A stretch of DNA of 64,000 bases from Neoechinorhynchus agilis (GCA_051530055.1 CM121342.1:8279412-8343411); one strand, 5' to 3'; positions 26,640-32,580 are shown, numbered from the stretch's first letter. Numbers and translations are program-made. The notes: generated by a model not told the origin, from the sequence alone.

Positions 26640-27113
26640 AGTTCAACCGAGTATTTATTCCTCACAAATCGTTCATTTTTCTCTCAGCCTTCTTTCGCCT
26701 GGTGGATATTATTCGCTTGAACACGATCACAATCAATAGTAAATTTGAGACGTTTCCAGAACTCGTTCTGTTAAAAATAGCCAAACATCTCGATATCAAC
26801 GACATTTTAAACCTATATCGAGTATTCTTTTCCATGGAGGGATAGTTACTGCTGGAGGTTTTTTTAGCTTGACAGCTATGGATCTCCACCAATAACTGAA
26901 GAGTCCTGGTTGTCTCATGTGGAAGATACCGCCAAGGATAAAAGCAAAGATTCTTGCCTGTTTGACGCCTACGCGATCTCATGGCAGTGGGCATGTCGGT
27001 TGTCAATCTGAGCGGAAAATATCCAAGGCCTACTTTTATAAACGATTGGTCCGGTGTTATACTATTGATCAGTGGCAGGATTCATAGAACGAGTGATCAT
27101 GTCAATAATTCTT
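26640..27113 (-). pseudogene. Unclassified coding-like repeat family member, 3' part
   Basis: Collinear with 32780-33010 (ITPDQSFIKVGLGYFPLRLTTDMPTAMR versus TTSDISSMGAHLGYCRFRWKTNMSTAIR). Contains stops. Confidence 0.5.
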
Positions 27114-27120
27114 TAAATCG

Positions 27121-27146
27121 CCAGAGCCACATCCGACTGAGTAACG
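27121..27146 (+). rRNA. 5.8S rRNA 3'-terminal fragment
   Basis: ccagagccacatccgactgagtaacg resembles the 5.8S 3' end and is complementary to the 28S 5' end at 27487-27503 (ITS2-proximal stem). Confidence 0.75.
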
Positions 27147-27486
27147 TTTAATGCTAAAGTGAGCAAGTGTGGGTGAATGTCAATGGAAATTGATCTTCTG
27201 ATCGTTGCCATTGACTTTACGGTTACTGCGTTTGCCTCTGGGTGACGCGCAGGAAATAAGGTAAATGAGAAAAAATTATTGCAGAGATGCTACTGCTAAT
27301 ATAGTTATGCAACACGTGAATCAATACTGTTGACGGTGAAAGGGTTCAATAATTGTGAAGGTATTTGAGTCGGTTAAATATTGATCGTGCGTTCTACTTT
27401 CGAGTAGATGATGATGAGTTGTGTAAGATGAGGAGAGTACACGTTGTTGCATCATACTTTTATTAGCAGAATTGGCATGAAAGTCA
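27147..27486 (+). other. ITS2
   Basis: Position between the 5.8S end and the 28S start. Confidence 0.75.
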
Positions 27487-28084: not shown

Positions 28085-31000
28085 AGTCTACTCCAAGGAG
28101 AAGCCTACTGACCCTCCAGATGAAGGGGGTGAAATTCACGAACCACAGGTTAGTGAATTGTGTGATAGTGGGACGGGGAGTGATGCCTCCGCCGTTATTG
28201 TTTTTCCCCCAGTTTCCCCACAGGTTTTTGCATCTAATACTCATTCACAAAAAAATTGAAAATTTCATATTAAAATTTAATAAAGAAAAGATGGGTAACA
28301 AAAGTAAATTTAATCTTATAAACTACTACGTAAAACACACATTAAACGAAGCTCAACGTAAAAATATGTTTTTTCCATTAAAAAACCTTCGAAAGCAAAT
28401 TTTCAGTAATGATTGTTTTCTCAGACTACAAAGATGCTTTCATCAAGACATTAAATGAGCTAAATATTCCTTTTGAGGACTTGTCGAGGAGGGTCACTTT
28501 CCTTATGATGAATCCCCCACAAGACCTTCCCGCTGAGGAGCAAAAAATTATTGAGGTTGAGAACAAAATCAAACTTATTACCGAAAAAACTCATCAGCCT
28601 ATGCTTTTCTTTGCTCTGCCCCCTCGTCGAAATAGCCGACTCGTTATGTGGTGGGTATAAAAGATGTATTTTTTCGTTCTGGGTGACATTCACTAACTAT
28701 AAAGACACCATCCAGGACTATAACTTAACCATTTGTCAGAGATGTGCCAGCTGGGCACTTCATCGCTGTGGGGGAGAACATCTAAAGGCGAATTGCCCAA
28801 ATCTCAAAACCCCATGCTATCCCAATTGCGGACTAAGTCACCAAACATATTCAAGATCACGTAGGGCGGCGACATCTTTTTTTGGAAAGCTGTCTGAAAA
28901 CAGCCAGACAACCAAGAAAAGAGCTTAAAAGTGTCACAGTTACATTTGCACATGAACCCCGATCCAACGGAATGCAGCAATAAACTTTAACAAATAGAAA
29001 TTCACCCCAAAATATTTCGACCGAACATTGTTTTTTTAAACCTCTAATGGAGAGTGGTTCTCTTAAACCAGACTTGAAAACCCCAATAAACCTCCCGATT
29101 CATTTCTTAAAGAAACAAATGGCGATAAATTGATTTCAGTTTTATTCCAAGATTTGGAATCACTAAAAAAACCTAATTTTCATACTGTTGAATGCTCTTA
29201 GGGTCAACGGCATTTGCAAAGATATACCCGCCAATTTACTAGACCCGGGTATTCCTCCGCAAGTTAACAAGCGTCATCCATCCTCCGTAATTATGATTTT
29301 ATTAAACCTAAGAAAGGACGAGCTAATATTTGATGAATTTTAGCCTTGCGACATACAATACATCAAGAGCCTTTTACTTACCCAATCATATATTAGGAAA
29401 AATTTGAGAGGTTCTGCAAGACCTATTGTTTTTTCAAGAGACGGCCGTTGCATCTCATACAGTCTGATTCTTATAATTGTTTTAAACTGGACCAGTCACC
29501 ACCAGCTAAAAAATTTAAATATAGGTTTTTCGGGAGGTTTACAATGTTTCATAAAAACGAAATGGAAGCCAAAATTACTTGAGCAGGAAAAAAACGAAAT
29601 TTTTTCTTTCCAAGTTGTATCTATAATAAATCCTTTTTATTTCCCAGCATCAGGTACACATCTGATTATTGTAAATTTCTATGTTACTCCCAGGAAGGTG
29701 TCTCACTTCCTAAAATTAAAATCTCATAGAATATCGATTTGGTACCCGGACTTGATATGCGGAGATTTCAACTCCAATTATCTTTCAATCTTTTTTCAAG
29801 GACTACTCAAGCTGTATCACTAAATTCCCACCATTCCACAATTATTCAAAGCAGTCTCATTCTTTTCTAGACGGATTCTTAATAAAAAAAGTCTATTCCG
29901 ATTAATATGTACCCCACTGCTCAACCTCAAGTTCAGCAACGTATGGGACATGATTTTATACTATTTGAATATAAAGCCCTTGACTTAAAGGACCGAATTG
30001 TTATCAACCCCAACTCAATTTTACATTTTAACGTCAAGTTGACAATGGGATTGAAAGCTAAGAGAAAAATATTACTCAAAGATCTAAACGATATGATATT
30101 ATCAGCAGCCGACTCTTGTTTAATTAAAAAGGGTTTTATTCACAGAACATTTGCCTCCAAGGAAGCCAATATAATATACAAGAGGGCTATTATAGCCAAT
30201 TTAAATAATGAGGGAACTGAATACAAAATTATAATGTCTCAATTTTACTCAACAATTCACAAAGAGGAAATGGAGAGGGATAAAAATGTACTATTTTATG
30301 CAAAACCTTTTCTAAACCTTTTTGGAATGTTATTTTAAAAAATAAAATAGTTAATTGGAAAACTAAGCCAGCGTCTTGGATTGGATCCGCCTCTTATCCA
30401 GAAGTTATCAAATTAATTTTGACTGCACACACTTTCTCTACTTTTACTAATCAACCAATCATCATTTTGCAATACAAAAACTTTGCATGGAACATAAAAT
30501 TAGAGGAACTTTTAAACGCATGGAAATCAAACCCGTCAAGAGCGAATAATTCATTCGCTGTTTCCCCTTCCATCTTTTCTTGTGTCTTTAAAGATAACAA
30601 ATTATTATTTTTACAATGTTTTAACGATAAAATCAACACTAAGGATCTATTATCTATCAATAAAGCAAGGAAAATATTTATCCCAAAAGCGAAATGTAGA
30701 AAAATTTCAGATCCCTCACACATTCAAGTTATATTGATCCAGAATCATTTAATATCGTGTTTGGAAACATATAATTAACTTTAAAGTCATAAACAATCTC
30801 TTGAAAAAAACGGGTTCATTCCTGGTAGAGGAGTACACTCTCTTTTATCATCCCTTCAATCCTACAATGAAAAGTACACTTACGTAAATAAGTTCCTACT
30901 ACAACTGGACCTGAGTAAGGCCTTTGATTCAGTAGACAGAAATTTTCTTTACAAAGCGCTTTAAAATACCAATCAATCTCATATACGAGATTAATAATTT

Positions 31001-31770
31001 AGTTGAGACTAAATCTTTTTTTTACGATATCGACCCTAACCGCACTAGTTTTTCCACCAAGTACGGTGTACCACAGTGTTCCCCTTATCTCCTACCCTTT
31101 TTCTAATTAAAACTACTATGAACAAGTCCAAAAATATCTTTCCTCTTATTCAAGCCCATGATGTGTTTCTATTGTGTAAGCACAAAAAGCGCAGTTTCTT
31201 TACTTTCACATGTACAAGAATACCTTAATCTTTTGCAATCTAATTTTAGTAAAGCCAATCTCATATTCAACCCCAACAAAACTGTAATATTGCCTCTAAC
31301 AAAGTCGTTCAGCTCAAGATTTCTTTTAAAAAGAGATATTAAAGCAAAAACTGCTAATTTTTTAGTAAAAAGAAATAATCGGATTCTCGGAATCGATTTT
31401 CCTGCTGGAAAAAATAGACTATATGTTAACACATCATTGAAAAGCTTCTTCTACAAAATCAGCAAGATACTGAAAAGATCACAACGTTTAACTTTAAATA
31501 CTCATTTTATTCGTTCCATTATTATCACATTTCTTGGCGGAACCAAATGTTTCTTTGCTCGGGGCCGTCCACCGGAATTACGACTTTTCTTTTTTTACCA
31601 AATTTGTAGATAAATTAAAAATAGCTTGCCGTCAATTCAATTTTAACTTCAAAAACATTGTTTCAGCAATAAATAGAATATTGTCGCGAAATTTATTATC
31701 AATCGCAACTTCATTTTATACAAAACATTATGGCACAAATGTGTCACCTTCTAATTCCAAACATTAATGC
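28085..31770 (+). mobile_element. Near full-length degenerate AT-rich LINE with gag-like ORF1, APE and RT (Jockey/I/R1-like ORF1; clade not resolved)
   Basis: TDPPDEGG; CQRC..CGGEH..C..CYPNCGLSH knuckles; LICGDFNS; GFIPGRG; LQLDLSKAFDSVDR; YGVPQ.SPLSP; LIFNPNKT. Confidence 0.85.
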
Positions 31771-31997
31771 GATTTTTATTTTTGTAAAAAAAGGCCGACT
31801 GTTTATAAACGCACTAAAAAAACAAATTCTAAGTGTACGCATCTTAGATGAAAGAGAATATTGTCACATTTTTTATTAATACAATTCATTGTCTTCAATA
31901 GTTGTACTGAAGAAAGATCCGATAACGAGAAAGCTAAGCATAGGCTTGTTCGTCGATGTTGATTGCGGATTCAGTCGGATGTTCGAGAAGAAATTTC

Positions 31998-32580
31998 TAG
32001 AACGAGTGATCATGTCAATAATTCTTGAAATAACCTGCCGTTCGTACATTTAAAAGGATATAATCCGCTTTCAGGTTATTCAATGCCAGGAAAATATTTT
32101 ATACGCTGTCGTATTTGTATTTGTGTTATCACGGATGCATCGGAAGTGGCCGAGGAAATTGGGAGAGATTTTCTTGAAGCCTATAGACTTTATGGAAAGA
32201 AATTTTTCTATGTCAATATTGGACCTTTTTACTATAAAAAAACGGACGCGTATCGTCATTGCGGTTGAAAATACGGATGGATTTGTTAAGAACAAGGAAA
32301 TAGCTAGCGACGAAAGCAAAAAGATTATTGAGTGCTGTAAGTTGAACTTGGCAAGTGTGCTATGCACCGCACCAGTTCGGTTGGATATGGCCGAGTAGCG
32401 CTCTCCTGCCAAATAAAAGATTTTTTTCTAATTATTCCGACAAAACCCCTGAAGGTTTTCATTGTCAAAATTCGTATTGCGTTTTTCAGTTTTATCAGTG
32501 ATATGAATAGTTTTGCAGCTATGGAGAAGCGGGGTTTGATTTCTGATAATAAGGTTCTCGTGGTCAACAATTTTCACCTG
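31998..32580 (-). pseudogene. Unclassified coding-like repeat family member, 5' part
   Basis: IRQRIKYFPGIE*PESGLYPFKCTNGRLFQELL. Homologous blocks at 32940-33010, 33639-33682 and 27085-27113. Confidence 0.5.

Follow-up and report, generated by a model that had tools for sequence, protein, structure and literature searches.

The DNA described here is a stretch of 64,000 nt from Neoechinorhynchus agilis (GCA_051530055.1 CM121342.1:8279412-8343411), termed the window and numbered from its first letter. It is located at 8.3 Mb of a 16.4-Mb contig; the rDNA units are found near contig ends. Two identical 29-mers in the window enclose a block of ~4.9 kb (27085–32026), comprising at least six pieces that share one orientation, all on the plus strand. 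Starting at the 5′ side these are rDNA, the tail of a retrotransposon (LINE C), a second retrotransposon (LINE A), the 3′ UTR of a TBP-like gene, a snippet of TBP-like coding sequence, and rDNA again. Two dead LINE pieces and two snippets derived from the TBP-like gene are thus held between rDNA on both sides. Loci elsewhere in the assembly are denoted by L numbers.

The block interrupts a dispersed repeat unit of ~650 bp, called F. The left half of F (26744–27084) runs directly into the left 29-mer (27085–27113), and the right 29-mer (31998–32026) continues as the right half (32027–32306). A reading made from the sequence alone had reported the identical repeats, and exactly two occurrences are found, with 0 matches expected by chance; BLAST lengthens the repeat to 34 bp with one mismatch. 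That reading had also taken the outer flanks for one member of a repeat family, correctly, as they are contiguous in L031 and L032 (C1), where the left half matches at 72–73%, and at ~32.9 kb in the window. These paralogues carry a single copy of the 29-mer region where the flanks join. The window holds the only recent copy of the left half in the genome, while the right half has eight recent copies that are 95–98% identical (89% for pairs with L063) and older copies at 66–72%. The 29-mer itself is invariant in all nine of the nine recent copies. Its immediate neighbours in the window differ, being ATTCA and TAAAT at the left copy and ATTTC and GAAAT at the right, and those of the right copy match the lineage of the unfilled paralogue L019 rather than the window's own left half. 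Since the 29-mer is invariant in the recent copies and its right copy was probably written from a paralogue, the identity of the two copies is not a clean TPRT footprint. Upstream of the block, a tRNA-containing stretch (25979–26250) is repetitive, with at least 10 copies, so that block-level paralogy traced through it is not decisive.

Following the left 29-mer is a junction stretch (27114–27124), the error-dense start of the rDNA, which resembles the rDNA just upstream of the clean match with small indels. The main rDNA piece, r5 (27125–27993), then begins. The 5.8S end, ITS2 and 28S 5′ region that had been recognized in the left part of the block are indeed present, with 27125–27992 matching genuine rDNA units. 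Mapped by Rfam on the rDNA unit L022 (5.8S at 976–1131, LSU from 1478), r5 contains the last ~22 nt of 5.8S (to ~27146), ITS2 (~27147–27486) and 28S from nt 1 to ~529 in D2 (27487–27993). Compared with seven rDNA copies it has no private substitutions and two private deletions of 6 and 23 bp, and its arrival, or its last overwriting, was therefore recent. The junction between the left 29-mer and rDNA is unique in the genome. A second rDNA piece, r3, overlooked previously, is located to the right of the LINE (31941–31991) and consists of 51 bp of 28S D2 (L022:2252–2302) that in rDNA is 245 bp downstream of r5. As 27125–27992 and 31941–31991 match L003 and L022 in the same order and orientation, the two pieces form an orphan rDNA fragment; further such fragments exist at internal sites of the genome, in the vicinity of C3:1609500, C2:2439906, C1:2687955 and C1:12331328. 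Every rDNA end is error-dense over 10–17 nt, as expected for template-switch junctions.

From the end of r5 the block continues as a 39-bp 3′-terminal fragment of LINE C (27994–28032), placed between 28S and the main LINE and likewise missed at first. It matches the 3′ ends of L058–L061, and in the family copy L059 an RVT_1-positive ORF is found upstream of the matching tail. The fragment is bounded by an 8–9-bp direct repeat of rDNA sequence (27985–27993 and 28033–28041). On the basis of this small target duplication of its own, the LINE C tail is a separate insertion. It is followed by an imperfect continuation of 28S D2 (17 bp, 28033–28049), with two substitutions and a 2-nt deletion relative to 14 rDNA copies.

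LINE A (28050–31715) is a decayed non-LTR retrotransposon, and is dead. Its boundary with rDNA had been placed at 28078–28090, and is now set at ~28050, where the 99% copy L002 begins. LINE A starts at the same base as L002, its only other copy, and both L002 and the weaker relatives of LINE A are located outside rDNA. Its 5′ end is complete, but 3′ UTR and tail are absent and ORF2 runs to about the end of the element. The C-terminal alignment with the ORF of L059 stops at ~31700–31715, directly at foreign sequence. A 59-aa piece (30785–30961) gives a weak match to RVT_1 at E 2.6e-4, below the cut-off. The longer segment 30311–31628 aligns to RVT_1-positive ORFs of related elements, and 30311–31085 aligns at E 6e-21 to one with RVT_1 at E 1.4e-26, whose best PDB matches are R2 and L1 ORF2p. 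These homologies point to a reverse transcriptase domain of the non-LTR type. Pfam gave no match for nine LINE ORF pieces and four further pieces, and the assignment of endonuclease and gag therefore rests on CCHC-like and GDFN-like motifs spotted by eye. LINE A has no convincing TSD of its own. A 6-bp repeat, TGGCAC (28047–28052 and 31731–31736), could be a short one; this is ambiguous, as there is likewise similarity to the paralogue in the 14 bp that precede the second copy.

The ~230 bp before the right junction had been left unexplained. It comes from a protein-coding gene. T193 (31716–31908, with a firm match from 31730) reproduces the 3′ UTR of a gene with a TBP domain, and T32 (31909–31940) is 32 bp of that gene's coding sequence, copied exactly from its second TBP repeat. 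The source gene has a 700-aa ORF (L066:963–3065, minus strand) that scores 34 bits with Pfam TBP against a cut-off of 22.9 (E 2.6e-8). T193 is contiguous with it in L066, L067 and L019, and in both L066 and L067 the 32-mer of T32 is found within the ORF, 472 bp further upstream. At the L066/L067 locus the 3′ UTR is native, lying behind its own gene. This paralogous locus is 60 kb away. The ~305 bp of 31730–32034, which include the right 29-mer, have no substitutions relative to it, where ~7 would be expected at the rate of the flank. The next ~270 bp beyond 32034 have seven substitutions (2.3% in the flank) and three indels. Between r3 and the right 29-mer is a 6-bp junction (31992–31997), the last 5 nt of which are the family sequence preceding the 29-mer in L019.

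The right junction, comprising 28S 51-mer, 29-mer and flank, is found again at six further loci, all of which are devoid of the LINE and of the left rDNA piece. Upstream of it L046 and L047 have the same gene-derived sequence as the window, whereas L044, L048, L049 and L051 have a satellite, with no similarity to the gene-derived type. L019 lacks 28S: there the TBP-like gene and 3′ UTR are followed by 20 bp of family sequence, then by the 29-mer and the flank. The satellite was considered as a retroelement tail and rejected, being a tandem repeat of ~268 bp that is ~70% similar to arrays beside rDNA units. Four extra 28S-like bases at the satellite junction were considered as proof that more 28S had been retained; this is weakened, as neighbouring satellite units are similar at that spot and the bases may be microhomology.

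Junctions of three types fall within 4 nt of L022:2252, namely the gene-snippet junction and the satellite junction; the third is a deletion of 55 bp in L020, a genuine rDNA copy. A zone of ~140 bp around this breakpoint is almost invariant in paralogues whose flanks differ by 4–11%, the pattern expected if repeated cleavage were repaired from filled copies. We think it unlikely that 28S D2 is broken or nicked in a sequence-specific manner immediately 5′ of L022:2252 (28S nt ~775) by a candidate nuclease or rDNA-targeting element. A hairpin as the cause of the breakpoint is not supported (DNA fold z-score +1.2), nor is a structured RNA in the invariant zone (fold z-scores of 0.2 and −1.3), where Rfam gave no match at E ≤ 0.1.

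The sequence-only reading had seen the block as a chimera of pre-rRNA and LINE with a 29-bp TSD. Its observation of ITS2-bearing rDNA beside a LINE of the same orientation is borne out. Formation of that chimera in one step by a single TPRT event is not supported. Non-LINE sequence of ~280 bp (31716–31997) separates the 3′ end of the LINE from the right 29-mer, and ORF2 homology meets foreign sequence directly, with no LINE 3′ UTR or tail. While the left junction is unique, the right is common to the six LINE-less loci, and the segment carrying the right 29-mer is free of substitutions relative to L066/L067 where the flank just beyond has 2.3%.

We favour a reading of the block, with a probability of roughly 0.55, as a mosaic built in multiple events at the DNA level, by templated repair of breaks and gene conversion between repeats. 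Breaks in and beside an orphan rDNA fragment within the dispersed repeat unit would have been repaired from whatever template was at hand; templated filler guided by microhomology is established at repaired breaks (PMC2943611, PMC2567098). In such a course rDNA from the 5.8S end to 28S nt ~825 would have been pasted into F, with F sequence duplicated on both sides. D2 between 28S nt ~529 and 775 would then have been lost and filled with a LINE copy, by capture of cDNA or DNA at the break. The gap would also have received a paralogue tract that already bore the gene snippets, the 28S 51-mer and the 29-mer, and re-annealing within the homologous right flank would have terminated the copying of this tract. 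Exchange of sequence between the paralogues makes the order of these steps provisional. Several features count against the mosaic. The pieces r5 and r3 are colinear and co-oriented, only 245 nt apart in 28S, which would follow naturally if a single inserted fragment had given rise to both, and would be a ~3–7% coincidence if r3 came only with the paralogue tract. The two halves of the family overlap by only 29–39 bp, resembling a target duplication. The assembly contains no genomic sequence that could have served as template for the 3′ third of LINE A. Lastly, all six pieces are sense and LINE A starts at the start base of L002, both of which are predicted by an RNA-level route.

The alternative that survives best is a single old insertion into F of a contiguous ~1.2 kb of rDNA, from the 5.8S end to 28S nt ~825, with a true target duplication of 29–39 bp. 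In this account 28S nt ~529–775 was replaced later, and the six other loci were descended from the insertion or converted by it. Either a LINE enzyme acting in trans could have retroposed pre-rRNA, or a staggered break could have captured rDNA. The colinearity and proximity in 28S of r5 and r3 are accommodated, as are the adjoining of the same family segment to both rDNA ends, the existence of empty paralogues and the orphan fragments at other internal sites. We regard it as a tentative possibility. While r5 has no private substitutions, the right junction is common to loci with 2–11% flank divergence, so an old insertion needs r5 to have been refreshed from rDNA or the junction to have spread recently. 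Moreover the differing flanks of the 29-mers (ATTCA/TAAAT against ATTTC/GAAAT), with the right version fitting the L019 lineage and not the left half in the window, and the uniqueness of the left junction in the genome, are contrary to it.

A template switch could alternatively explain the left part of the block only. RNA of LINE A (trans-mobilised) would have been reverse transcribed to its 5′ end, whereupon the enzyme jumped to an ITS2-containing pre-rRNA, joining r5 to LINE A in one event. In keeping with this, r5 is young, is in the sense orientation upstream of a full-length LINE 5′ end with the start base of L002, and the join has microhomology and sloppy bases. However, r5 and LINE A are not in contact, being separated by 57 bp that include the LINE C tail with its own 8–9-bp duplication and 17 bp of 28S-like sequence. 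The 3′ side lacks a TPRT junction, having neither 3′ UTR nor tail where the LINE meets the gene-derived tract copied from a paralogue, and the 29-mers cannot be the TSD of this event, the right one being part of the shared tract. Such a switch seems improbable to us. It is very improbable that LINE A is specific to rDNA, with a new target in 28S D2, and was moved here with flanking Pol I transcript or rDNA. 28S does lie on both sides of the LINE-containing stretch, and the three junction types described above are all within 4 nt of L022:2252. Against this, LINE A is absent from all 11 uninterrupted and both locally rearranged D2 regions (11/11 and 2/2), L002 and the weaker relatives are outside rDNA, 225 bp of gene-derived sequence keep the LINE off the downstream 28S and so preclude a precise 3′ junction with the rRNA gene, and 245 nt separate the upstream 28S join from its downstream counterpart.

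The block can be compared with several known systems. Chimeric retrocopies of the U6/L1 type, formed by template switching of reverse transcriptase, similarly have cellular RNA sequence 5′ of a LINE in the same orientation. In these, a single TSD encloses a product that terminates in the LINE 3′ end and poly-A, whereas in the block the LINE 3′ end is missing and LINE-less loci have the same right boundary. Endonuclease-independent insertion of LINEs at double-strand breaks is a known route that could conceivably apply here; LINE A resembles its products in its complete 5′ end, missing 3′ end and want of a convincing TSD. In the rDNA-specific non-LTR elements R1, R2, R8 and R9 the 3′ junction is strictly fixed, and rDNA units carry many copies of them (PMC5035012). 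The non-LTR element of the block is also placed between two 28S pieces; unlike them, LINE A has neither a fixed 3′ junction nor multiple rDNA copies, and has its relatives outside rDNA. The serial joining of short and long pieces from different templates is shared with the templated filler of synthesis-dependent MMEJ, MMBIR and NUMT-type capture (PMC2943611, PMC2567098), as are joins that are error-dense and show microhomology, and a 32-bp piece whose source in the donor locus is just 472 bp distant. The block differs in its unusual size, of kilobases including a 3.7-kb LINE, and the mechanism is here proposed from sequence alone. Like other orphan rDNA ('orphons' and pieces of rRNA pseudogenes) the window has a partial unit with transcribed spacer far from the subtelomeric rDNA copies; it is unusual in that two LINE pieces and a patch taken from a protein-coding gene interrupt the fragment, and in that its right end belongs to a seven-locus family.

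Had the earlier reading been true, the block would have provided either a first case of a LINE enzyme switching to pre-rRNA that bears ITS2, or a new target site in rDNA, within a variable expansion segment. Instead it is probably an ordinary, if intricate, outcome of break repair and of copying between repeats. An exact flanking repeat together with a LINE is insufficient for a call of TPRT when the repeat family undergoes gene conversion. The recurrent breakpoint in 28S D2 and the nearly invariant 140-bp zone around it are the features of note. The locus joins orphan rDNA with dead retroelements and with parts of a gene family located nearby, and its paralogous copies overwrite each other.

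The window (C2:8279412-8343411 of a 46-Mb eukaryotic assembly) contains an exact 29-mer twice, at 27085-27113 and 31998-32026, confirming what the sequence-only reading had described for the ends of the block. The chance expectation is none, and in BLAST the matching pair spans 34 bp with a single mismatch. The claim that the outer flanks join into one member of a repeat family also holds. The left (26744-27112) and right (31994-32305) flanks are uninterrupted in loci L031 and L032 (contig C1) and in a window paralogue at ~32.9 kb, each with one homologue of the 29-mer region, and are thus the halves of one split ~650-bp dispersed repeat unit, F. 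The perfect match between the two 29-mers cannot be taken as evidence of a fresh target-site duplication, since the 29-mer is unchanged in nine of nine recent copies and the bases around the pair are unlike (left ATTCA/TAAAT, right ATTTC/GAAAT), the right version being that of the paralogue L019. The right half of F also holds the left arm of a 39-bp inverted repeat pair (32081-32119 and 33641-33679; 95% identity), and 25979-26250, a stretch that includes a tRNA gene (26000-26070), belongs to a repeat present in at least 10 copies (72-96% identity).

The interior of the block comprises at least six parts, not two. Starting from the left 29-mer, the first is a piece of rDNA, r5 (27125-27993). 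From its alignment to genuine rDNA units (27125-27992) and the Rfam map of the reference unit L022 (5.8S 976-1131; LSU from 1478), it contains the final ~22 nt of 5.8S, ITS2 in full and 28S nt 1 to ~529, within D2, just as had been proposed. Rfam also calls eukaryotic LSU rRNA at 27510-28127. Compared with seven rDNA copies r5 has no private substitution, lying 2 bases from the nearest, while each of the seven has 1-14 private changes; it does have private deletions, one of 6 bp and one of 23 bp. The junction of the 29-mer with the 5.8S end is found nowhere else in the genome. Genuine rDNA units are mostly close to contig ends. Further orphan fragments with 69-98% identity to ITS2/28S are located at internal chromosomal sites (C3:1609500-1609651, C2:2439906-2439997, C1:2687955-2688678 and C1:12331328-12331534), and the tandem array at C28:21218-23214 (period ~336 bp) resembles part of ITS2 (window 27194-27319) with 73-75% similarity. 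On C5, C6 and C44 (e.g. C6:7109-7187, 28300-28378, 65626-65704 and 83557-83635) there is another, divergent type of 28S, with 86-87% identity in the conserved core just past D2 and no match to D2 itself.

The strand continues with the 3′-terminal 39 bp of another LINE family, LINE C (27994-28032), having a common terminus with L058, L059 and L061. These share up to 119 bp ending at that point, with an RVT_1-positive ORF upstream in L059. The tail is bracketed by an 8-9-bp direct repeat of rDNA sequence (27985-27993 and 28033-28041), and together they form the signature of a separate, severely 5′-truncated insertion. After an imperfect continuation of 28S (28033-28049, from rDNA comparison) the sequence passes into LINE A, a dead non-LTR element in more than 10 ORF pieces. 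Its start base (~28050) is that of L002, its only other copy, which is 99% identical, located 200 kb away outside rDNA and cut off at 30893. The RT region can be aligned to RVT_1-positive ORFs of relatives, and alignment to the C-terminus of the L059 ORF reaches ~31700-31715, beyond which LINE A retains neither 3′ UTR nor tail; in LINE C this region is about 350 bp long. L064:3304-6111 (-) is a better-preserved LINE A relative, with a 503-aa ORF (RVT_1 E 1.4e-26) and a weak zinc-knuckle match in an upstream ORF. Elsewhere in the window a 310-aa ORF at 5764-6696 (+) matches RVT_1 (E 1.3e-22), and an 866-aa ORF at 46835-49435 (+) has a very divergent myosin-head match (E 1e-7, below cut-off).

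What had been noted as 230 bp of unexplained sequence before the right 29-mer is accounted for by two pieces of a TBP-domain gene. The first (31716-31908) is its 3′ UTR region, which at L066, L067 and L019 begins about 75 bp past the stop codon of a 700-aa ORF. The second (31909-31940) is an exact 32-bp coding snippet of the L066 ORF, located there 472 bp upstream. The remainder of the gene was not found in the window beyond 31716-31940. The last piece, r3 (31941-31991), is 28S once more (L022:2252-2302), colinear with r5 and 245 bp further downstream, so that the LINE-containing stretch has 28S on both sides. The gene itself (L066:963-3065 (-), also L067 and L019; at least three recent copies on one contig) is an intronless ORF with a C-terminal TBP core (Pfam TBP, 34 bits); its N-terminus, rich in glutamine and proline, is internally duplicated as a 444-bp tandem repeat.

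The right junction characterises a family of loci. Six others on the same contig also carry the 28S 51-mer, a 6-bp join, the 29-mer and ~280 bp of the right flank. At two of these six (L046/L066 and L047/L067) the upstream sequence is gene-derived, natively placed behind the gene; at the other four (L044/L062, L048/L063, L049/L064 and L051/L065) it is a ~268-bp satellite, about 70% similar to arrays adjoining rDNA units. L019/L050 is without any 28S; there the TBP-like gene and its 3′ UTR are followed by 20 bp of family sequence and then by the 29-mer with the flank. LINE A and r5 are absent from all seven. Window 31730-32034, which includes the right 29-mer, has no substitution relative to L066/L067, against seven substitutions and three indels in the next ~270 bp, and is a recent transfer tract. 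Transfer probably ran from paralogue to window, the gene locus being the native place of the 3′ UTR. In the satellite-type loci (L062-L065) a ~140-bp zone runs from 46 bp upstream of the 28S piece to 8 bp beyond the 29-mer (94 bp after the 51-mer start). A single site varies within it, compared with 4-9 per 47 bp elsewhere, and its flanks differ by 4-11%. A 41-codon ORF that begins in the end of the satellite lies within this zone.

The data do not support a single target-primed insertion of a pre-rRNA/LINE chimera with the 29-mers as its bounds, since the LINE lacks its own 3′ end and does not close the block on the 3′ side, the right boundary lies within a tract common to loci without the LINE, the LINE C piece has its own target duplication, and the snippet was copied from coding sequence at another locus. 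The best-supported reading, with a probability of roughly 0.55, is that the block may be a DNA-level mosaic. The duplication of the 29-mer and the colinearity of r5 and r3 would come naturally if both were once a single ~1.2-kb fragment inserted long ago with a true 29-39-bp target duplication. That is possible, if tentative; the lack of private substitutions in r5 would have to be explained away (r5 renewed from rDNA, or the junction having spread recently), as would the mismatched bases around the 29-mers. A template switch from the LINE 5′ end onto pre-rRNA, limited to the join of r5 and LINE A, is unlikely. That the LINE is resident at a new, D2-specific rDNA site is highly improbable, as 11 D2 regions run through the site without interruption, two others (L020 and L023) are only locally rearranged, and none holds this LINE.

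Junctions of three types lie within 4 nt of 28S L022:2252, in a nearly invariant zone. L022:2248-2252 is a recurrent rearrangement point; the L020 rDNA copy has a 55-bp deletion ending there, and L023 a local direct plus inverted duplication of 2212-2276 (fold-back). No signal of a hairpin or structured RNA was found at the breakpoint or in the invariant zone, and a site-specific break behind the recurrent junctions is doubtful.

In the mosaic reading, rDNA sequence would have been pasted into unit F. A break within the D2 portion of that rDNA would have been filled with a LINE copy plus a tract from a paralogous gene-type locus, and the copying of this tract would have stopped where it re-annealed to the homologous right flank. 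The larger share of this reading goes to a route in which the paralogue tract alone brought in r3 and the right 29-mer; that r5 and r3 lie so near each other in 28S would then be a chance event of a few percent, and the duplication would be a by-product of repair re-entering the paralogue upstream of the break. The joins of the block have microhomology and error-dense ends, consistent with templated, microhomology-guided repair (PMC2943611, PMC2567098).
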